This document shows positions 35,930-63,979 of a stretch of DNA of 64,000 nucleotides, piece after piece. The first letter of the stretch is position 1; the number at the start of each line of letters is the position of its first letter. The stretch lies in contig JALDTO010000208.1 in NCBI GenBank assembly GCA_023515725.1, positions 954,367 to 1,018,366 of the forward strand, in the 5' to 3' direction. The stretch is from Amoeboaphelidium protococcarum X5. Lineage: Eukaryota > Fungi > Aphelidiomycota. Position numbers and translations under genes: made by a program. The notes below the pieces were generated by a model. That model saw only the letters and a list, made by a program, of their open reading frames with translations. It was not told the origin of the DNA and made no database searches.

Positions 35930-36050
35930 CGACGTAAACAGGGAGTGATTGTTACATGGATGATTAGTATTAGATGCCTACAGCAATACTTTATGAAAGG
36001 CAATGAATATGTAAAAGATTGAATGAATGTAGATATAATTTTATTTTTAA

Positions 36051-36767
36051 TCAGTTGAGAATCAAAGCAGTTAGCATCAAAACTATCGAGAGAACATATC
36101 CACTTCCTAGGACTGATACGGATGAGCTTGGAATCGGAGTCACTGCATCCTTATTGTCGCCATCATTGGATTGTGGGACCTGTACAGCTGGAGCGCCAGT
36201 GTTCTTGTTATCGTTCTTGTTGTTGTTATTATTCAGTGTATTCAGATCATTGGCAGTAACGTCAAAGTCATAGACCGTGGCAGGAGGAGCAGTATACTCT
36301 TTTCTCTCTCCCTCAACCAGCTGTGTGGACCAAGACATTGCAAAAACACCAGACTGCAGGTTGACTTCACCATTAGAGCTCTGGAAAACAACACGGTACT
36401 GTGAGCTGGAAGGCAGTTTGTGATTAATCAGCATTTACGCGTCAACCCAATAGCAGGAGCATTTCTGACTCACCATGTCGAAGCCTCGCTACATTGCAAT
36501 GTTTATTCCATAGAATGAGTTTACCAGGTACACTGTTACCAGCGGTTAATCTTTAGGATTACGCGTCAACTACTAGTAGAGGATCTGTGCACCTTTAGGC
36601 TAACCACCACTTGGCAGAGCATAAATTGTAGTTAGAGGATCATCAGATTTAGTCAGAGAGGTCTTTGCAGGATCGTTTATCCAAGCGATTTTACCATTTG
36701 ACAATTCAGCAGAGTGAGCGACTTGAAACAATGCAACGGCAATCACTGCTCTTAGTAGACTGTTCAT
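36051..36767 (-). CDS. Predicted secreted GPI-anchored surface protein ('CSCY' family member 1), 238 aa
   Basis: Signal peptide MNSLLRAVIAVALFQVAHS, globular domain, N/S/T-rich linker, hydrophobic C-terminal tail (VLSIVLMLTALILN). Confidence 0.8.
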
Positions 36768-37058
36768 TTTCGATAGTTTTGATATTCAGATTTAAGCTGC
36801 TTTGATATTATTATTTTAATTGTATGAGAAGAAGAAGAGAGAGATGGTTATACTTTCATAGCTTTTATAGTGAAGGGTGTTGCTATTTCAGATTTTATGG
36901 ATCTATTTGTGGTAAGCAATAAGCTCGTTTTAGTCACAACGCGCTTAAAATACTAACCATTGAGCACAATTAGCAACACCTTTTGATATACCCGAAATAG
37001 AATAATAGAGTCTCTAAAACATGTTATAAAAGTAAGATGGTAGGTATAAATGATTAAT

Positions 37059-38105
37059 TCAATAATTTCCATATTGCAATTTTTGAGCAGAGACCACAAA
37101 CTTGCGCTGGGAGATTATTTCAGTTTTACCCGCCAGACTGGATGCTTTCCAATCGCCCAACTCATCGTTGCTGAACAGAGATTTACCGTGATGATAAGCA
37201 GCTTTCACGGTACCAGTAAGATGTATGTCTAGACCACGTATATACGCATAATCTTCAATATCATAGTAGCCTTTGAGTAAATCTTGAGTGCGGTACAGAT
37301 GGATATCAGGTTAATTTTAGATTGCGATGGTAACGCTTATCTTATTCATTATAGATGGTACGTGCTGGCAACGCAACTTTCTGTACATGCGACACGCTTT
37401 GTAGCGTAAACTGTTGGCAGCACGTTTAATCTTGGCAACATTCCAGCTAATTCTTAACACATCTTACTAAGTATAGTACTTGATAGTGAACAGCAAAGGC
37501 TTTATATTAAGAAAATACGGTTGATAGTAGATCTTAACTGCCTGTTTGGACTTATCGAACTTGATCGCGCGATCAAAAATGCCGTTGACCATGGAATTCA
37601 CGTACCTCTCGTCAGAATCTTCTTATTGAGGGAGAGTCCTTTCAACCTGGAAATCATCTCCAGCGTTTGCCGCTGGTAAGACAGCTCTATCCTATTCAGC
37701 TTCTTCTTCATTTTCAATTTATTCAGCTAAATCAGCATCAATTTAGGTACTGGCATCAACCATGACTTTTGGCGCGGATTGATCTTATGCAGGCGGTGGA
37801 CCCATCAGCTGTCTTATATCTTGGTTACGCAAATTACTAGGTACTCCAAAATGGAAAGCAGATTCTATGTCACCTGCATCTGGCTCCATCTACCTTCTAA
37901 AAATTTACAGTCTCTTTTAAGCAATTCTTACACGATCATTGTTATCTCTATCACTATAAATATTGTCATTGAGAGCACGTAGATACTCTTACTAGCCGAT
38001 TGATGTGCCCAAATTGCCCCAGTACTCATCACCAGGACGAGTACCGTATGTAATAGTAGGCATCATCAAGATTAACACAACTATACACGCGCTAAATGTA
38101 ATCAT
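37059..38105 (-). CDS. Predicted secreted hypothetical protein, 348 aa (candidate effector)
   Basis: Uninterrupted table-6 ORF with signal-peptide-like start MITFSACIVVLILMMPTITYG; no family recognised. Confidence 0.65.
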
Positions 38106-38336
38106 ATTAATTTGTTTCTAATTTAATGGCTTTATTGTAATGAGTAATGGTTGATGTTGTGGAGAGACGATTGAGCAGCATATCAATCGACTGTCCTCAA
38201 AAGGCAAAAGTGGCTTAGATTTAACATCGAAAGCGCCGCTTTTCGCCACATGGTTCTTGCATTATCAAAAAATTGTCAAGTTAAATGTAAAATAGTATCG
38301 CTTAGATAACGCCTTACAATAATTCAAACGTCAAAG

Positions 38337-40003
38337 TCATAGTGGACGATTACCTACGCCTCCGCCAAAATCATATACCAATTGAGAAATCTCTGATCCA
38401 AGTTTATCCACGGTGTCTTGATCGTCAGCCTCAGCGTAAACTCTAATGTAATCTTCAGTGCCAGATGGACGAACAAATGATCTGGCATTCTTATTAGATT
38501 ATTTGGCAACCACTTGGTCAATCTTTTATTGCAGGCCTGTTGGAGCAACTAGTTTTCTATCAGCATCTACAGCTTTGAATGCAGATCTGTCGGCCACTTT
38601 GACTTTGAGCAACTTGTTCGGCATGTCCGTGTACAATCTCTTCCACTGAGCACATGACCATTTGCGAATGTGCATGATAGCTTCCACTAACAGCATATCA
38701 CTTAATGCATCTCCTACAGTCTAATTGATAACGTTCAACACGTTATGCAACTAATTCACAGCCTTCTTTTCTTCACTGCTCAGCTTGTCATCTTTGCACA
38801 AAGTCTTAATCTACTTTACAGTCTCTTCACTGAATAAGACAGTTCCATGACCATTTGCCTCGAAATACACTCCAATTCCAAACTGTTATGCTTCATGATG
38901 CAGATGCTTAACACCAGTGCTGGTACAGACGACAGGCACCTTGATAGAATTGAAATACCTAGTGGATGCACCATTAGCGTACGCAGTTTACACAACTCCC
39001 ACGGTCACCTTATTCAGTTGAGGAATCTGGGCCAACAATTCGCTAATAAATGATGCATACAGAGCACTCAAATAATCACCATCTAAAAGCTGAAATTGTC
39101 CATTCTCAACAAAATAATAGACAACACGGTCAGCGTCTCCATCAAAAGAGCAGCAGCGGACAGAAGACTTTTGTACAAAGTCATCATTACTGATCTAGCT
39201 AGGAAGCTTCTAACCAACTTTGACATAATCACTTCCACAATCACTATTCAACCTTCCGGTTAATCAACTAGACTATTCACCACTTTGATATGGTTAGAAG
39301 TATTCAAGTACGGGATAAACTACTTGACAATGACACTACCGATACCATTGGCACCATCTATAATCAACTATGATGCATTCGAATCCACTACACAGTCTGA
39401 AGTGAGGGAATTATAGGCAGTTGACAGCTTTTTGTAATAACCATCAAGAGAGTTATCGCCATATACCGGATCATTACGAGTTCTGACCATATAATGCAAC
39501 TGAGGGGTGGTGCAGTCACCAATATTAACAACTTCAACGTTGGAGAAGCAGTAAATGCCATCTAAAAGTGCATTCAACAATCGCTCACCCGATGGACGAG
39601 TATCCTTTCCAACTATTACCACCGTCTTCTTATTGGAGTCTATCGAATTATCAGAGATGATCTTGGACACTGAGGTTGGAAACTAGTCTGCTCGATAAAC
39701 GTTACACAGGTCCGTGGCAATTTTCTCCCATTCAGGCACAAGCATATCGCCCATAGGCTCCACAATCTTGACTCCATTATCATGAGATGGATTGTGACTG
39801 GCAGTGATCATGACACCGACTGCTTGACCACAGAGAGCTTTTGAGCGCAACGCAGCAACAATGCCAACCTTGAACATGATGGCATCCAACAGGGAACTGT
39901 CCATTCTGAACCCGGCAGTGCCATAGACCACTTTGAATTCTTCCTTGCCCTTGTGCTTGTCCAGGCCAGCTGTTATCTTTTACTAGTCAAACGCCAACGT
40001 CAT
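38337..40003 (-). CDS. PGM3: Phosphoacetylglucosamine mutase (PGM3/Pcm1) with one apparent 1-nt frameshift near 39258
   Basis: [37 protein letters not shown], [frameshift] [38 protein letters not shown]. Confidence 0.92.
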
Positions 40004-40500
40004 AATTATAAAAAGTATTACTTAAAAGTGATATTTAGAGTGGACTTGGAGAAGTTGTTGATGTTGTTTCAAAGAGAAAAGTCTTCTGTAGCAAAGTGTG
40101 TGAAGAAGAGAACCAGAGAGAGAGTGTGTGTGTGTGTTGGGAACGGGCGCGAGAGAGTGATTGAAGCGGCCAATTCACTCGATTAAAAAACAAATGCGCG
40201 GTTCAAAATTGAAGATTTTACTGTAGAAATGGTGCGAGTAAATTCATTCAATATAAAATACCTTAAATCTACACGCTTAATTTTGAATAGTGGTTTTCAA
40301 GCTGCCACTTACTCTGTCATTTCAATTGTATATTAACGATATCTGCTTAGCTGAAACAGTGTTGACTTGTTTCGAACACTTTACTCTCTACTGTGGTCAA
40401 ACAAACGATAGAGACACGTCTACTATAGCTCATATTCGCTTCACTCTCGTACATTACACTTAAGAAAACTAAGACTGACTTGTACTCTGTATAAATATCC

Positions 40501-42046
40501 TAGGAGGCTGGATTTAAAAAGAAGAGGCGCTCTTTAGAAAATGATAAGGAAGTGCCTACTAATCAAGAATAGACGCAGAGTTCTGTGAGTGCGCCTGCTA
40601 CAGGTACAGCTTCCTCGTCCAATGAGAAAAGAAAGCAAAGGGCGTTAGAGTCATGGTAGCTGCCAATTGATGAACGTATGAGCCACAAGTAGAATAAGTA
40701 TCACTACAATCTGCGATCATACAGTCAAAGCGGTGCACCAAGACTTCAAGTACTTGTCGCTTCCTCTTCCAAAAGCTAATATTCGTCACAAAGTACCACA
40801 TAGGAGAGCAGTGTGCAAGTGTAAGTCAGCCATCAGGCCGATTGCCAACAAGCAGGTTATGCTCTTGCTTAATCCACCTTAAAAGTCATGGGCAAATTGG
40901 CGGTGGATGTAGGGGTAAATGAAGTGGCAGAGGCAGATGAAGTGGTAGATGACGAAGCAGTTGATGAGGATGAAATTCATATCAGCTTGGATGAGTATAA
41001 TGAATAGGAACTGGCAGATTTACATGAGTATTTTGATGAAGTGAAGGTTGAGCCAAATCGCAATTAACGCGACCTGACCTGATTAAATGATCCAAAGTTC
41101 AAACAGCTGGACCTCAATGATGAGCACTTGGTATTTATTGCTATAGATCCAGGTGTAAACTATTTGGCCACTGTTGTTTACATTTAGGCAGAAGAAGGTC
41201 GTTCGGCGTTGGAGACACTAGAGGTGAAGCTGAGGTAACCGATTAGAGAAGGTTTTCAGACCAAGATGATCAAGACTTCAGACTACCATGAATTAGTGTC
41301 AAGCCAGCTGACAGCTGAAGAGAAGACGATGTGCAAAGATGTCTTCTCAACACCAAAGTACACTTTCCATGCCGTCGACTGCAAGATGAAGACTAGAGAT
41401 GCTGCACTCAGAACTGACCAGAGAATGCCACTGTATATGGATTTGACGATACAGAAGGCTTTGTTTAAAGAGCACTTTACAAAGAAGTCTGCACTGTAAT
41501 AGATTGCTAAGGATATCTGCAAGTTGCCAAGGTTTGTCGCCACCAACCAGAAAAATATCATTGTGTTCTATGGCAGTGGTGGACTGAAAAGATTTAGCAT
41601 CTACTGTCGACCAAATAACACACATCCTCCAGAAGTCAAGAGATTATCGAAATGCCACAAGGAAGCAAGCGAAGCAGTTGGAAATTGGCACGGTGGTGTT
41701 TGTCTTGGATGTGAATCGGGATTTAACTGGGATGCGATATATGAGGGACTTTATGAGATTTTTGGTATAGACGGAAAGAAGGCTTATGCGTTGAAAGATG
41801 AGATGGGATCCATATTGAATAAGCATGTGTCGAGAGAGCATCTCAAGGTTAGATCATAAATGTTTGCTGATCTGTCTGAGTTGGAGGTGGAGTCGATTCA
41901 GAATCATCGTGGATTAGATAGAGACGGCTTTGAATATCGGGTTTGTTGAAAGAAGTTGGATGCTTCGGAGGATTCTTGGTAACCTTAGAGGAACTTCTAT
42001 GGTTGAAAGGTCATACAGCATTACTGGAAGTCTCGTTTTGCTGTGA
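40501..42046 (+). mobile_element. Degenerate Fanzor/TnpB-like RuvC nuclease gene (5'-truncated pseudogene)
   Basis: Table-6 frame: acidic linker, in-frame TGA at 41080, RuvC-I LVFIAIDPGVNYLATVV (D at 41146), bridge-helix-like FKEHFTKKSALQQIAKDI, IIVFYGSGG...HPP, SKCH / CLGC Zn-finger remnants, RuvC-III LDRD (41917-41925) followed in a shifted frame by ALNIGFV. Confidence 0.72.
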
Positions 42047-42542
42047 GGGTGTAGCTTGTGGCTGGAAATACACGGACAAAAAGACATCTAAATTGATCAG
42101 TGATCTTTTACGGAGATATAAATGCGGCTGTTGTTGTTGAAATGAAAATTGGGCTAACTATGGCGTCTAATCACGCCCATGAGGTATTTCACCTGCTCAT
42201 GAGGAGCTAAGCATAGAACAGTTTTCACGCCGTCTGCGAATGTTCGTTAATCAAGGATTACCATTGGAGCCGAGAATTGGATCAACGCGCTATATCGAAC
42301 TCTGTAACTCTTGAGTGAGAAGTAAGTGGTCTACCTATTCAAAGAAGCCAAGATCTTTGACGACACGTTTTGAGATTTAGGATGTAGATAGAAACAGACG
42401 TACACAATGAGTGCGTGTATAAATAAATGATTTGTTATCAATGCAGTAGATTATGAAATCCTGAATTAATGTTTTAGACTGGAAGATAAATTAATTTTTA
42501 CTTTTATTAATACGGTATTCGAAATGACCACTAATATTAATT

Positions 42543-43944
42543 TCAGTTTCTCAGGTGCTATTTTAAATTCGGCGGAAATATAAAGCCGCCCTGCGCAATC
42601 AACTTGTCAATCCAAGCCTTGCCTTTGTTCATGGCTTCCGCATCTTCCTTACGCATTTCCTCCGCAATCACTTCCGCCGCCTCATACATGTCAGAACTTA
42701 GACCGAGCTGTATGTTGTTAAACAACACGCGACCAGTAATCTTCTGGAATGGAACAACTTTCGGAACTTGGCCAACTCCTAATTTAAGATACAAGTCGGC
42801 AATTCTATTGGCGTTGAAAAATTGATCAGCAAAAATTGGGACAGCAAACGTCGGTGAGCCACTCAGTAATGCCGCAGCGGTCGTACCACTTCCACCATGG
42901 TGAATAATCAAATCGCACTGTGGAAAGAGTCGTGCGTGTGGACTGCTAGATATCAGCTAGATCTAGGGGGATAATTCCGCCAAAACCGTACTAATTTCAC
43001 CAGAAGCCTCACCGACAAAGAGTAAATGGTCACGCCATATGCCTGTATGAAGTAGTTCAAATCTGTCACCAACTTTTTGAACACATTAGTATTCCAAATT
43101 GCCATTGATCCAAATCCAATATAGACTAACTTATCACCTTACTAGCGCGCAGACTATTCTACCTAAATTAAGCGTGAGCTCAAAGGCGGCGAATCTTAAC
43201 TGGCTTAAGAAGAGTATGCGGTAAAATACCCACTCAGCTCCACAGACGCAGGATAATCCGCCGGCTTTGGGAACAGATACGGGCTCATGGCATACAAAAT
43301 CCCTCCTGAAAATTCTTAATCGCCCTCCAATCTCTAAAGTCAAACTTGACACCTCCATCATCAGCCATTTTATTCCAAAAACTATAGCGCGACTACCGGT
43401 ATGGCGTACCAGCTTTATAGACTAAATTATAAGAAAGCCGATTCAAGAATCTAAACCAATTAGGCACCAACTGATCAATTACAACAAAAGGAAAGTCACC
43501 AGTTTAATGGAATGGGAAGAGAAGCAGCTATCCAACCGGAATATCGTACTTCTTGCCAACAATCAAAGCTTGATTAACGTTGAACATATTAGTGACGATC
43601 AGAGAGGCATCGCGGCAGTGAAAATCAATGTTTTCATAGATATTCCACTCATCATCATCAGATGCCACAGTCTTGCTGACAGCATTCATCGTATCACCCT
43701 TAGCTATCAATTCCACAATCTCCGGCTACTCCGCAAACGCGTCAATGTTATTTTGGAACTCGCGATTAGTCTACAAAGGAGCATACGGCACGTTATAACT
43801 CTCTACCAACAGGCGATGGTTCCCAGATGTCATAACCAGAGGTTGGTACACTTCATCAGTTCCCGGATAGGTTCTAGTCATTAAGAATTGCGCAAGTGCA
43901 TACACATCGCCACGCGTTCCTCTCGTTAAAAAGCACACTTTCAT
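42543..43944 (-). CDS. GT1-family (sterol 3-beta-glucosyltransferase-like) glycosyltransferase with two apparent 1-nt frameshifts (near 43302 and 43025)
   Basis: MKVCFLTRGTRGDV, LYAMSPYLFPKPADYP...SGYF, LVYIGFGSM, PHARLFPQCDLIIHHGGSGTTAAAL...VPIFADQFFNA. Confidence 0.85.
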
Positions 43945-44267
43945 CCTTAATAGAAGGTATATCAGATCTTGGAGCCTCGAAAGATACCTGCAAAAGAAAT
44001 AACAGGAATTTATTGCTTCGCCACACCTCGCGTCAGGATGCAGTGCTCGTCAAGCGAAGCCGAGGAGAAGCGTGAAGAAAGGGTGGTAATACACGGCCTC
44101 ACCTCATCTACTTTCACACCAGATGATATCGCTGTATCCGTGTCAGCATCCAGATTTACTTGGCTATCCACAAAAATAATAATTTGTGATACGGTCAGGT
44201 CCCATCAGTTTATAAATAATGAATTATGAGTCATTTCGAAATCAAATTTCATCCGAAAAAATTGACA

Positions 44268-44341
44268 ACTCCCATAGCTCAGTTGGTTAGAGCGTTCGAC
44301 TGTTAATCGAGAGGTCGGTAGTTCAAGCCTGCCTGGGAGAG
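44268..44341 (+). tRNA. tRNA-Asn(GTT)
   Basis: Cloverleaf: D arm GCTC-AGTTGGTTA-GAGC, anticodon arm TTCGA-CTGTTAA-TCGAG, T arm GGTAG-TTCAAGC-CTGCC, acceptor CTCCCA/TGGGAG; followed by a T6 Pol III terminator. Confidence 0.93.
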
Positions 44342-45248
44342 TATTTTTTGCATTTTTTGTTAAAATGATTGTATTGCTGCGATGGCTGCCTGCTGGAATG
44401 TCATTTATCGCTAAAAGTGGTAATAGCGATGTCGCGTTTCAAGACTAATTATATCAAATTGCACGAAAATGCTGTATATCACTAGTAAACTCATATTCTT
44501 ATTAAAATGAAAACTATCACGACTTTACGAAAATGCCAGCTTAAGATTTGCCTAAAGTTGATACATTTTGCTTCCTGTCTTGGCTTAGTATCTCGTCCAT
44601 CACGTTTTATTTCGCTTTTGACATGTTTGACGTCCAAGCAACAAAATATATATCAGGAAAGCATGTGATAAGTGGTATTAGACAAAAATGAAAAGTCAAG
44701 TGTATGCATAGTAGAATTTAATCTATCAAAAAACGTTTTTAATATTAGGATCCTGAATTCAGTGTAAACGTTTACTTATGCGATATGCTTATTGCAGCAG
44801 GATGTGGTTTCGAAACAATGTAAAACCACATCAACAGCTGTAAAAAATTTGTCGACGCGTTTTTCAATAGAACATCTCTAGCATGACTACAATACGTGTT
44901 TACTTACTTGTGCAATTAAACCACAGACTTATTATTATTCACATACCTTACGAATTTCAAATTAAGTTAATACACACTGAATATCAAGTTGATATCAATT
45001 CCACGATTATTATGTATCTTGCTTAATCTTATTTCTACGTCCTTGCACCTATTTTATACGTGAATGAAGACGTTACATGAGGTAATGCAATAGAGTTGGA
45101 TATAGATGTATCAAAATATTGTCAAGCTTTTAGAGTCGATATTCAGATAATTTCGTAAAGATCATTGGGTTCATACCACAAAGTTTTACGACATTTAATA
45201 TAAGCCTAAAATAAGCGCCTTAAACTGTATTTACATTTGATACTAGAT

Positions 45249-46145
45249 TCATTCAACATTATAGAGAGTAGACGCAATAGGAGGAGAGCAGTTAGCACGC
45301 GTTTGATGGCGTTTTAGAGAGCCTTTGCAGGTGAATGATTGTTTACATGTTGAGCATTAGAGTGATTACTCAGAGCTTCCCTTGTGATGTACCGAGACAA
45401 TATGAGCTTTGAGATTATACGACGTGCTAAACACTCGACCACATATAATGCAGTCATACGATTAGATGCGATTGGCAGAGTGCGCGTAATTTAAATGAGT
45501 CTGGAGTGAAGTCTTATTTTTCAACTAAATTCCACAGTGAGGACATTGTTAAGCCACATTATTATGCACGTCGTTTATGTGTTATTTCAACTAAAGAGCA
45601 GAGTCAAACACCAATGTACAATCCTTAATTCCACATGCAAAGTGTGCAGGAGTGTCTTTTCGCAAATGACACGTACGATGGACCATCAGTTTGGAAGGAT
45701 AGGGAAATGACCACTCACAGCCATCAATGCCACACGCATAATAACTACCATCTTTAATTTCATGTACCGCTTATACGTGCTATAGCAATTAAGCCTTCTT
45801 AACAAATTTAGCATCACACTCATGGTAAGTGCATGCAAATAATCTTGACGCCTAATCAATAGTGAGATGGTGAGATTTGCAATGCCTCTACAGCTACTAT
45901 TTAGTATAGAATGACTTTTCACAATGCTCACATTAATGGCGCCTTTCTGCTTACGCGTCACCGTGCTGTCTTCTAACGTGATCCTGCAGATGATCTTTAC
46001 GAATGTAAGCTTTATCACACATTTCACACTGGAATGGCCTGATATTATTATGAGAATTCAAATGAATCTGCAATTTACTAAAACACGGATACTTTTTACC
46101 ACACCCGTCAAAGTGGCATTCAAACACTTTTCCACTATCTTCCAT
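45249..46145 (-). CDS. Nine-finger C2H2 zinc-finger protein, probably transcription factor IIIA, 298 aa
   Basis: Nine consecutive Cx2-4C...Hx3-5H/C units beginning FECHFDGCGKKY...HLNSHNNIRPFQC; finger number and layout are typical of TFIIIA/Pzf1. Confidence 0.8.
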
Positions 46146-46280
46146 TTTAATACCGTGGTAAAGTGATAGATTAAACAGCAAAAAGAGAATTGTTGAGAAA
46201 CAAAATGTCTGATTGGGGCAGATGAAGAGAAGAGAGAGATCACTAGAGATTGAAGAGAGCGCTTGTTAATGCAAACCATA

Positions 46281-47474
46281 TCACAGTTCAATTTGTTTCA
46301 AATAGTCAATCAGAGCCTGAACATCATCCAGTGAGACAGCATTATACAAGCTAGCACGCAGTCCTCCCACTGATCTATGGCCACCAATTCCAATTAAATT
46401 CGCCTACTTTTCTGCATTCATCACAGTCTTCTTTTCCACTGCAAAGTCCGGCGCGCCATTTACGCGAATTCGAAACACCACATTCATTCTCGATCTGTAC
46501 GCCTTACTAACGGGACATTCAAACTACGCACTATGACTATCCAGAAAGTCATACAGTTACGTTGATTTCTATAAATTCCTCTACTCTATAGCCTCAAGGC
46601 CCGTATAGGTATCATGCTTATAATTTTTAATCCATTGCAGAACCAAGTTGGACACGTAAATTGACCAAACGTTTGGAGTGTTGTAGAGAGCATCATTGTC
46701 GAACGCGACTTTATAACTCAATGCCACGGGTAGACAATGCTTGTGTTAGAGTTCAAGCAAAGACTTGCGCACAATAATCATGGTCAATCCAGCGAGACCA
46801 ATATTCTTCTAAACACCCCCATATAATAAAGCATGATGATTTAAAATATTCTTCGGTATCTACCGAGATAGAGCATTTGATGAAATGTCAGACACCAACA
46901 TTACATCTTGATACGGACACCCACCAACAGTAAGGGGATTAGCATCCTTCGGCCATTCGACACCATGTACAGTTTCGTTGCTGCAATAGTACACATACTT
47001 GGCCTACTTGCCGTCAATACTCCATTTCCATTCAGATGGTGGAGGTAGATGACCATTATGTGAGCCATTCACCTTCATCGTGTCAACAACACAGCGCGCT
47101 CTGTCGCCAATCAAGCAACGCGCTTCTTCAAACGCTTTCTAGGACCAACAGCCAGTGATGATAAAGTCTACGCATTCATCACCACCATCACTTAGATCAT
47201 GCAACAAGTTCATCAGCCATGCACTAAATTACAAGGTAGCACCACCGCCAGACATCCAACACACTGCCCACTGATCTTTATCCAATTGGTAGAGGTCATA
47301 CACCGTCTGCGTCAACTCTTTAACCATTGCTACAATGCTCGGATCGCGATGACTAATCTCCATCACACTGCAGCCTTTACCATCAAAGTTGCTAATTTCA
47401 CTTTGCACTCGCTGCAGAACCTCCTCAGGCAACTTACTTGGACCAGCGGTAAAATTATGAACTTTCTAAGTCAT
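46281..47474 (-). CDS. SER1: Phosphoserine aminotransferase, 397 aa
   Basis: [25 protein letters not shown](Q)[15 protein letters not shown](TAG)[24 protein letters not shown]. Confidence 0.96.
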
Positions 47475-61195: not shown

Positions 61196-62529
61196 TATTT
61201 TATTAGTAGAGGCGTATTATAACTGTTAAAAGAAGTTACAAGTATAAGTAAAACTGGATTTATCTTTTTCAATCAGGCAGCGGAATTCAAAGTCCATAAA
61301 GCGAGAAATCTGACTGGTAATCACTGTACGTTGTGGACAATTCTAGCTGTATTAAGAACTCATGCGAACGCGTGATTTCGATCTGGATGAACGCGATAGT
61401 ACTGATGTGATGTTTAGAAGACTGAACTGATGGCATCAATGACTTAAAATTGGGAAATATTGAGTAGCAATTTTTACTTTTGAATATTTCATCTTCATTA
61501 AAGAAGAAATCGCTCCATGGATATACTGGTTAAGAATCCTTGCTGGGTGAATGCAACGTCCATCTGGCAGAACAGGAAGATTTCTTGCTCTCCGATTAGG
61601 GCAGAGCTGGCCACTCTAGGAATTGAATGCTCATCAACGTTTCGGGGCTTACTAAGAGACTTGGCGCAAACTGCTTGTACGTAAATAATACCGCGTCTGC
61701 GAAGAAGATGAATCCAATTGCTACCAGGTGATCGTGAATTCATTTCATTATCTGGGAAATAATCATGGCAATGGTATGTTAAAGACATCCATGTTAGCTA
61801 AGTCTTCGGCGATCGGTGAGACACAACTTCTGCCATGATTGGTGAAGATATCAAGCCTTGTAAATTCAACCCGCTGCCTGATGTAGAAATTCTGACTGCC
61901 TCTCATCCCATCAATTTCGGCACTGGAAATCCTCTATATCTGCTGGAATTCCTCCTAAGTTTGTCTGAAACCATTCCTCTAAGTTTGATCTTTTTGGCGT
62001 TCATGAGCGACAGATTGGAGAATCGCTAAGTCGATAATGCCTTGCTGGTCGTAAATTGTAAAGACCTGGTGTAAGTCCTCAAAGCTGGCATATTCCCTGG
62101 TCATTTTGCTAAAACTGGACATCTGCTAAGACTCCTGATGTCTTTCTCCACTTCATTGGATGCCAGAGATGAGTTTGGCCATCTCATATGCAGAGGAATT
62201 CTAGTTAAAGAGGCTGTAGGTGCGTCTTTTCTCGCCATGATAGTAATTGTAAACCTGCAGTTAGACGTTAAAGAATTTAATAAACTTTATTCAAACCAAT
62301 ACTGTGAAGATAGCTTGATTGAAAATTTCGGTTCATATAGTTGTCGCTCATTAGAGAATTATTGTCAAAGGCTCTCTACTTTACCAATAGTATCTGTGAA
62401 CTGAACTTCTTGGTCGGAATGTCCTGGACATTGCTGGTGTATTTGGAGATGTATTGGTGTTTCCCCATGTTTATATCTTTGTACTGAATACCAAGATTTG
62501 ATTTTGTCTACTTGAATGCATCCTGTTAA

Positions 62530-62886
62530 TAAGAGTATGGAGAAGTATGAAGAACGAGCATAATTAGGATGCATGGTTCAGACGTGTAGCCCGGCTAGAG
62601 AATGCTGTCCGACAAACAATTCTCTAATTAACCAAATTTGAATCCTGAAAATGCCTCGTAATAATTGGTGTTCGTTGGAGCAGCTGGAAATCATGTATCC
62701 GCTCAGTCTGGTAGAATGAGACATCCTCCGCTGGTTTAGTTTAGGTCTATTCTCTCTAAATACGCTATTATCAAATTTACACCAGAGAATTATTCCAGTA
62801 CACGCTGCAATAGATGTCCGGACTTTGCTATTGAATCAGGGCGTGCTTCTCTTCGAGATGGTAACATCCTAATCGGGCTGAGTTGA
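62530..62886 (+). mobile_element. Second Fanzor/TnpB-like fragment (bridge helix, RuvC-II, Zn-finger start)
   Basis: Table-6 translation LVFVGAAGNHVSAQSGRMRHPPLVQFRSILSKYAIIKFTPENYSSTRCNRC (catalytic-type E at 62785, CxxC at 62806-62817), then RDGNILIG and TGA. Confidence 0.68.
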
Positions 62887-63669
62887 TAATGATATATAAG
62901 ACCAATAAATTTGTACATTACAATCTATTTCAAGACAACTAAGAGATGCCTGGCTAGTTTTCAGTCTAGGATATTAACTGCGAATGCAATGCTATCATGC
63001 TCCAGAATTAAATCGCTCCATGGAGCAGAGTGTTGCCGGTGGGTTTTACATGATTTTGCTATGCAATGCTCTTGTTGCATGCCAGTCATGTACGGCATCC
63101 CATGTAAACATTACTTTGGTTGGTACGTTAACGATGCTAATACGTAGGAAGTATGTTTAAGAGGCCTTTCAATAACAATTACAATTCGTCGAGCTGGCCT
63201 TCGCAATTTGCTGAAGTGTACTTAGGACAAGAATGAAAAGCTATCCGAATATGTAAACAAACAGCAAGCAGCTAGTCACAATGCCAGAGTTGCAATCGAC
63301 AATTATGGAAAAGTTTGGTGTAAAGAATTGCAACTGGCCATATCATTGTTCGGTATAGACGCCAAATTCCGTCTTGGAAAGTAGTGGCGGATGAAAGGTT
63401 GTACCTTGTTTAGTTTTAGACCGACAAGGACAAGATCACTAGAACCGATTCGAAAAGCCCACTTTATAATAGAAATCAGTCATAATCCGCCAACAGCTAT
63501 TGTGGCGAGACATTTTGTGAAAGCTGGTCTTGAGGTATATCAAAATTACGAGACTTACCGAGAGCAGGAAATAGAAATTAACGAATACTTAACCTCAAGC
63601 TAAAGTGCAGGCAATAGAAGGAAGCTAAGTTCACTGTAGATAAGCAAAATGTCGAGGTTTAAGAAGTGA
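62887..63669 (+). mobile_element. MULE/Mutator-like transposase C-terminal fragment (SWIM zinc finger)
   Basis: CSCCMPVMYGIPCKHYF (CxC-x(n)-GIPCxH SWIM) at about 63067-63117, and NYGKVW further downstream; no DDE core visible. Confidence 0.6.
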
Positions 63670-63979
63670 GTAGAAAGCGAAGGCCAGCGAACATGGCATG
63701 AAGATTGACGCGTTAGCGAGTGATTGGTGATCGGGAGTTTGTCGCCTCTCTTATCTGAAAGATTTTGGATGAATTATGATTTATAAGATTGAAATAGTGA
63801 ATAGTAAAAAAAAATTATCTTCTGGAATTGAGGTTTCCATGCTTGACTAAGAGGTCCATTAGAACGGTGGTTCTCGTGTCCCTGTTGATACTTCTGTTGT
63901 CGATAGTCTACGTATCAGGACCGGTCTCAAAGTAATCAGACGCACAATACTTTTGGAAAAATAGGCTATTAATAAAATT

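Follow-up and report, generated by a model that had tools for sequence, protein, structure and literature searches.

The DNA analyzed here (the window) is a stretch of 64,000 nucleotides from the aphelid Amoeboaphelidium protococcarum, a parasite of algae, G000:C207:954367-1018366 in a 23.6-Mb assembly whose contigs are given as C-numbers. Positions 40474-42174 of the window are most probably the dead, chimeric relic of a gene for a Fanzor, a TnpB-like, RNA-guided nuclease of eukaryotes. The relic starts within a truncated N-terminal part, runs through the RuvC-I motif to the RuvC-II strand, is interrupted by a foreign block of 476 bp and resumes directly behind this block with the RuvC-III motif. 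As the catalytic Glu is gone, the relic is predicted to be incapable of making a nuclease. It is an ordinary genomic fossil. Stops were read through in translation with the host code (code 6), TGA being written as X; searches were run with stop-free pieces or database proteins only. The parts of the relic are as follows.

40464..40473, no strand: left edge of the window-specific segment; the homeologous C264 alignment ends at 40463 and resumes at 44086 (blastn, 36001-40463 at 89%).
40474..41079, plus strand: 5′-truncated Fanzor start, with a TDLYSV strand (40474-40491), basic clusters resembling nuclear localization signals (NLS; KKKRRS, EKRKQR), a Ser/Gln-rich linker and a long acidic stretch.
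41080..41082, plus strand: TGA nonsense codon at the conserved Trp of the WLN[ND]P motif, aligned with W in the paralogues; in this strain only.
41134..41172, plus strand: RuvC-I motif FIAIDPGVNYLAT; its DPG is of Fanzor type, and its catalytic Asp is encoded at 41146-41148.
41173..41556, plus strand: helical stretch from RuvC-I to the RuvC-II strand; its conservation in the paralogues (e.g. RMPLY.D...QKA) is seen by tblastn and by hidden Markov model (HMM).
41557..41631, plus strand: RuvC-II strand IIVFYGSGG, then ...THPP, aligned with IIVFWGTGG...HP(A/P) of the paralogues.
41631..42106, plus strand: foreign block of 476 bp, SH3-like integrase tail and chromodomain, ending 10 nt past the pol-like stop at 42094-42096.
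42107..42174, plus strand: remnant of the Fanzor C-terminus, RuvC-III motif GDINAAVVVEMKIGLTMASNH with its Asp codon at 42115-42117; shortened by an 8-bp deletion at 42175.

Comparison of the window with its paralogues in the same genome provides the basis for the assignment to Fanzor. A profile built from five paralogues matches 40447-41661 with 164 bits (E 2e-51), the alignment beginning at hmm position 69, and the same profile finds a second domain, collinear and on the same strand, at 42100-42177. By tblastn in code 6, residues 225-472 of the C244 paralogue align with 40951-41715 at 31% identity (E 7e-36). The frame is in phase with 40201 and contains 15 in-frame TAA/TAG codons within 40474-41630 and one TGA at 41080-41082. 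The original prediction of a Fanzor-like locus written in the UAR=Gln code, with a frame passing through many TAA/TAG codons and a TGA at 41080, is thus borne out. The RuvC-I motif it had named is present, with the catalytic Asp in the DPG of IAIDPGV at 41140-41160; so is the strand motif IIVFYGSGG at 41557-41583, which has Gly where canonical TnpBs have Glu and is followed by HPP at 41623-41631. The unusually long acidic stretch ahead of RuvC-I is likewise real and is shared with the paralogues.

The Fanzor part is incomplete. Some 310 N-terminal residues of the C244 paralogue are absent from the relic, whose homology starts at TDLYSV (40474), ten bases into the segment missing from C264; this truncation is common to the two strains compared below. 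Further downstream, IIVFYGSGG...THPP (41557-41631) is the final Fanzor sequence ahead of the foreign block. The paralogues have IIVFWGTGG and then, ~40 residues downstream, THEKGTS, with the alternative catalytic Glu. In the window, HMM positions 405-445, which hold this Glu and the zinc finger, are absent, and the 476-bp block sits in their place; it replaces ~40 codons with the alternative Glu and the CxxC...CxxC zinc finger. The loss of the Glu segment had been correctly recognized, and the family HMM finds the missing segment nowhere else in the window. In agreement with this loss, Pfam gives no hit for CxxC...CxxC or PF07282 in the window model (P0005) or its orthologue (P0004), the C207 stretch of the window is not among the PF07282 matches of the genome, and Pfam on stop-free pieces of the window returned nothing useful.

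The nature of the block is indicated by its only other copy in the genome, C132:43964-44440; in DNA the two agree at 86% identity, interrupted by one 1-bp gap. Translated, the C132 copy gives an SH3-like GPYEIV...AYVLK segment, then a Chromo domain (Pfam PF00385, 41.9 bits, E 9e-11) and the end of the open reading frame (ORF). The patch is also collinear with a genuine SH3_Tf2-1 integrase tail of the same genome (L067; 25% identity, E 0.011). The window's copy has decayed: it contains a 1-bp indel near 41726, is broken by TGA codons at 41947 and 42004, and gave no Pfam hit from its own models. Upstream of the indel near 41726, the native frame of the block is +1 relative to the Fanzor frame; downstream, the two agree by chance, which creates the appearance of one long ORF. 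Among known systems, the block comes nearest to the integrase C-termini of chromodomain Ty3/gypsy (chromovirus-like) elements, as its C132 twin has GPYEI...AY.L, Chromo and the ORF end in the order seen in L067. It differs from them in that only 476 bp are present, that integrase core, reverse transcriptase and long terminal repeat (LTR) are found at neither copy, and that the assembly contains no intact element.

Directly 3′ of the block, the window at 42097-42207 reads SVIFYGDINAAVVVEMKIGLTMASNH, which is the family motif INGDVNAA.NILKIGL.MATN. The Asp of RuvC-III (D.NAA.NI) is present in GDINAAVVV...KIGL at 42112-42160, which continues to KIGLTMASN within 42112-42174. The corresponding tail in a second strain, ...VIFYGDANAA..KIGLTMASNHGQFPMQYT, scores 30.4 bits (E 6e-11) with the family HMM.

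This second strain (GCA_023515745.1, JALECJ010000254.1, protein KAI3649044.1) has the locus in synteny (L066): 13 kb align collinearly with the window at 90-94%, and both junctions of the patch are as they are in the window. Contigs of three other sequencing runs span one or both junctions, and no block-free or intact version of the locus was seen in four other runs. Since the second strain carries the same chimera at the syntenic site, the chimera is old and arose before the strains split. Both strains have TGA in the conserved Trp codon of the chromodomain. The Trp codon at 41080-41082 is TGG in L066, and position 41082 is G, not A, in all four other runs. Set against the second strain, the window copy alone carries small indels of 1 bp and 4 bp in the block, together with the 8-bp deletion at 42175. 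In L066, the NLS-bearing linker and the core are put in different frames by a 1-bp indel. Record 19 of run X6 (2,784 nt) and record 24 of run X7 match only 41007-41240 (WLNDP to RuvC-I), at ~82%, and then continue with unlike sequence; these contigs may represent a further, more distant copy of the window lineage that the assembly lacks. Over 39801-42800 of the window, run X7 has a depth of ~1000 on the neighboring mutase gene, zero at 40001-40600 and 3-15 over the relic, a depth profile that by itself hints at an RNA run in which the relic is transcribed at a low level.

A scenario for the origin of the chimera can be proposed. A Fanzor copy would have lost its ~310 N-terminal residues, and 476 bp from the interior of a Ty3/gypsy-like pol gene with a chromodomain would have taken the place of the ~40 codons that specify the alternative RuvC-II Glu and the zinc finger. 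The patch would have come from repair of a break with retroelement cDNA or an ectopic copy as filler; the absence of an LTR makes us prefer this to normal integration. Further lesions would then have accumulated: the chromodomain TGA found in both strains, the strain-specific change of TGG to TGA, the small indels in the patch and the 8-bp deletion in the tail.

The paralogues, found on C244, C158, C179, C212 and C235 by own-genome searches with stop-free pieces, show what kind of gene was lost. In code 6 they read ...VG[VI]D[PVL]GV...IIVFWGTGG...THEKGTS.HC..CE...C..CH..INGDVNAA.NI.KIG. The RuvC-I motif is GVDPGV or GIDPGV in C212 and C235, and its Pro is lost in C244 and C179; the triad DPG...E...D, proposed as a check on the Fanzor assignment, is present in the paralogues (e.g. 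P0008/C235, C212). Four gene models (P0001, P0008, P0009 and P0010) match PF07282 (Cas12f1-like TNB) at 35-38 bits, against a curated cut-off of 26.3, and the genome has 41 PF07282 matches. Two signatures define the Fanzor clade: DPG at RuvC-I (PMC10711439), and Gly/Pro in the place of the canonical RuvC-II Glu, an alternative Glu lying ~45 residues downstream (PMC10530073). The paralogue family shows both and, judged by its motifs, is Fanzor-type (TnpB-like). The alternative-Glu signature is found in the paralogues and not in the window copy, where the Gly strand is kept and the Glu deleted. A protein-language-model search places the RuvC half of a paralogue beside PF07282 clusters of eukaryotes and giant viruses (score 0.96).

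The window core is 24-33% identical to the paralogues. The best of them, C244, reads ~748 aa from its first Met and has a single TGA lesion. All five close paralogues bear lesions, and a third sub-lineage (P0007, P0011-P0013) is degenerate. The suggestion that intact copies may exist elsewhere in the genome finds support in other subfamilies: no intact copy of the window's own lineage was found, its nearest kin all being lesioned, and a scan of the JGI metagenomes for this lineage gave nothing. Two other subfamilies have long open ORFs in code 6 (at least 581 and at least 618 aa, both running off the fetched locus), with RuvC-I, a Glu beside Cys-rich motifs and the D.(N/M)AA.N motif of RuvC-III. 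They look like young, possibly active elements. The loci of these two subfamilies are L019 (C154:217828-220989) and L020 (C212:52812-55973), which are nearly identical, and L035 (C264:680366-683557) and L039 (C155:1148147-1151332).

In A. protococcarum, UAA and UAG encode Gln (Karpov et al. 2013, cited in PMC5304391). TAA/TAG make up 0.48 of the Gln codons of the relic, 0.54 of those of the best paralogue and 0.51-0.55 of those of two large host ORFs of the window. As the shares in the relic and the best paralogue are close to those of host genes, the Fanzor family is a long-term resident and not a recent arrival. A phmmer search of 1.84 billion representative sequences gave 7 hits, all from A. 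protococcarum, and two word-index searches likewise found only this species. Judging from these sequences, the subfamily is old, restricted to the species and fully adapted to the host code with TAA/TAG as Gln. The claim that such a family would be missed by standard-code mining holds only in part, as GenBank contains code-6 models of the locus and its kin, labelled hypothetical proteins, and several of the paralogue models have precomputed PF07282 hits. The literature search found no paper tying Fanzor to Amoeboaphelidium, and Amoeboaphelidium goes unmentioned in the portion of the supplements of PMC10711439 that was available.

The gene model for the relic in GenBank is KAI3634448.1 (MIR68_008052), a hypothetical protein. 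It places an "intron" over the in-frame TGA, which drops VEPNRNQRDLT*LNDPKFKQ; in the C244 gene model (P0009), an "intron" over the in-frame TGA drops ~120 residues. Both introns look like annotation artefacts on pseudogenes.

Several observations weigh against parts of this account. The patch looks like the tail of a Ty3/gypsy-type integrase, but its retroelement origin is inferred and its chromodomain alone is significant: the SH3_Tf2-1 match of the C132 copy is non-significant (E 0.13), and no integrase core or LTR is recognizable next to that copy. A PF24626 scan of the genome also did not have the patch among its matches. The tail of the window is weak alone (3.5-6.6 bits with the family HMM; E 0.001, and 0.009 over the whole window), and its probable identity depends on its collinearity and on the orthologue. 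An AlphaFold2 model of P0009:350-625, made from an 8-row alignment, reached a predicted local distance difference test score (pLDDT) of only 46.8. Sequence and profile searches of the PDB returned only non-significant matches (E 0.2-1), which were to TnpB/Cas12f-type chains at collinear positions. Finally, comparison of the window with L066 over the core (40969-41628) gave 24 synonymous and 25 non-synonymous differences, a ratio of non-synonymous to synonymous change (pN/pS) of 0.28 against a null median of 0.72. The differences fall 11/12/27 on the three codon positions, and none of 3000 base-matched permutations gave a pN/pS as low (P <0.001); a stricter count of synonymous codon changes gave P 0.005-0.04, depending on the control for sequence context. 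The bias is absent from linker, patch and tail. In a relic evolving neutrally throughout, this synonymous excess in the core would not be expected.

The excess points to an alternative in which the truncated Fanzor core was kept open and expressed after the death of the nuclease, as an exapted, nuclease-dead fragment, and was lost from the strain of the window recently through the TGA. The synonymous excess is confined to the Fanzor frame, neither the other strain nor the four other runs have a stop at the Trp codon of the ORF, and contigs of a run that is RNA-like by its depth profile alone cover the relic at low depth. But the excess comes from one sequence pair only and falls to P ~0.04 with a trinucleotide-context control. 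Moreover, with its N-terminal third gone, along with the catalytic Glu and the zinc finger, and with no RuvC-III helix in frame, the fragment would be of doubtful stability as a fold, and in the other strain the NLS-bearing linker is out of frame with the core. We regard exaptation as rather unlikely, and the excess as a lead to it, not as a finding. Were this unlikely alternative true, RuvC-I and the helical lobe would be under purifying selection, with a role, for example, in binding guide RNAs from related elements or as a decoy for them.

It is very improbable that the family is not Fanzor at all, and is instead an unrelated eukaryotic gene family sharing short motifs. Its confinement to A. 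protococcarum (the 7 hits among 1.84 billion representatives), the non-significant PDB searches and the poor AlphaFold model would fit such a family. Against it stand the four gene models above the curated PF07282 cut-off and the complete order of motifs, with D(PG), the Gly strand, the Glu ~40 residues on, CxxC..CxxC and D.NAA.NI. The nearest neighbors in the protein atlas are PF07282 clusters of eukaryotes and giant viruses, and even the weak PDB matches fall on TnpB/Cas12f-type chains in collinear positions.

The structure that the original prediction gave to the 3′ third, one continuous Fanzor ORF whose zinc finger had decayed to SKCH and CLGC around a helical insert and whose RuvC-III was frameshifted at LDRD and ALNIG after an ~8-nt deletion, has almost nothing left to recommend it. 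The frame is indeed open in code 6 from 41083 to 41946, and the KAI3634448.1 model also reads straight through. This stretch is, however, 86% identical in DNA to a chromodomain-bearing copy elsewhere, and the native frame of the block upstream of ~41726 differs from that of Fanzor. SKCH and CLGC are out-of-frame readings of the block, and the supposed helical insert lies inside it (41631-42106). LDRD opens the chromodomain (HRGLDRDGFEY...), and ALNIG appears by chance in another frame. The true RuvC-III remnant (42112-42174) and the C-terminal tail lie downstream of the block at 42107-42174, beyond the end of the region first described. The continuous reading is contradicted by the identity to C132, by the Chromo hit of the C132 copy and by the score of the orthologous tail. 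A functional fusion, with the chromodomain recruited to Fanzor for chromatin targeting, is just as hard to credit and is rejected on frames and shared stops: the Fanzor and chromodomain sequences are adjacent and their arrangement is conserved in two strains, but the block begins in a frame other than that of the Fanzor part, the conserved Trp codon of the chromodomain is TGA in both strains with more stops and indels after it, and the block has no codon-position bias.

With the locus read as a dead chimera of a Fanzor gene, its family can be compared with known systems. It resembles Fanzor1-type proteins (e.g. SpuFz1 of Spizellomyces punctatus) in its eukaryotic host on the fungal side of the tree, in the large size of its best paralogue (~750 aa), with NLS-like basic clusters and a disordered acidic region, and in the conserved 3′ non-coding region of the paralogues. 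The catalytic motifs agree as well, with DPG in the family, Gly at the canonical RuvC-II position, Glu ~40 residues on beside CxxC...CxxC, and D.NAA.NI. The N-terminal strand of Fanzor1 has TDG, whereas the family has TDL, and there is no significant sequence match to any solved Fanzor. The family also differs in that transposase partner, terminal inverted repeats and target-site duplications are not defined for it and in that TAA/TAG are Gln; in the window copy, N-terminus, Glu, zinc finger and RNA region are missing as well. With Fanzor2 and IS607-type TnpBs that have a rearranged catalytic site (ApmFz2 of mimivirus; the pro-Fanzor TnpBs), the family shares DPG and the alternative Glu (PMC10711439, PMC10530073), and its weak, collinear PDB matches are to TnpB-like chains. 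The paralogues are, however, much longer than these, with ~135 residues from RuvC-I to the RuvC-II strand and a long N-terminal extension, and no IS607 TnpA was seen nearby.

The paralogues share ~470 nt of 3′ non-coding sequence after the Fanzor stop at 85-95% identity, while coding DNA between sub-lineages is only ~75% identical. In the loci on C244 (L049), C179 (L051), C235 (L053) and C158 (L050), this sequence ends at a common ...GTGCATTCTGATGAATATA. The conserved region is a candidate for the guide-RNA scaffold and the right end of the subfamily. An nhmmer profile of it found nothing in the window (E>1), and 42150-42540 of the window folds no better than shuffled sequences (z +1.24) and has no match in Rfam; the relic, as far as its sequence tells, has no recognizable guide-RNA (omega/reRNA) region.

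The surroundings of the relic add some further observations. The window at 36001-40463 and 44086-46517 is 89% identical to C264 (L055, C264:1233000-1242999, minus strand), its homeologous region. In place of the 3.6 kb specific to the window, C264 carries a different insert of 2.65 kb, in which lies a frameshifted gene with a P-loop (GTPGIGKS). C244 (491,013 bp) and C158 (491,221 bp) also look like homeologues. Within the window-specific 3.6 kb, the minus strand at 42600-44050 encodes a glycosyltransferase of GT1/GT28 type (HHGGSGTT...DQ..NA), with an apparent change of frame near 43130-43290 that may be an intron; the syntenic gene of the other strain is annotated EryCIII-like_C, the homeologue lacks the gene, and a copy of 85% identity lies at C154:734537-736094. 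The 42 bp at 42392-42433 are 90% identical to C205:520416-520457 and C154:273184-273225, and the 247 bp at 42192-42438 are 69% identical to C135:38451-38684, ~1.6 kb from a PF07282 match on C135. Far downstream, 62400-63800 contains a SWIM-type Cys/His motif (CSCC...GIPCKH), typical of MULE transposases. The Fanzor subfamily profile found nothing at 62400-63800, so any Fanzor fragment there belongs to another subfamily. tRNA genes (Leu, Ser, Asn) lie 0.1-2 kb from several copies of the subfamily, a raw count with no background density. On C158, one tRNA-Leu is ~70 bp beyond the conserved 3′ end, and C179 and C235 have none in the fetched 10 kb. The tRNA genes have the following positions.

L049: 9419-9500.
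L050: 4742-4825 and 9320-9400.
L052: 4216-4301 and 9308-9390.
Window: 44268-44341.

The locus also carries a caution for annotation. Where TGA is the sole stop, unrelated fragments readily fuse into plausible ORFs, and public gene models splice around real stops. Should further strains bear it out, the synonymous-site excess in the core would merit attention. The locus is a fossil of little importance in itself, and it adds to the evidence for a large and old population of Fanzors in this aphelid. The host belongs to a lineage that is sister to the fungi and has a reassigned genetic code; its Fanzor genes stand in GenBank only as "hypothetical proteins."

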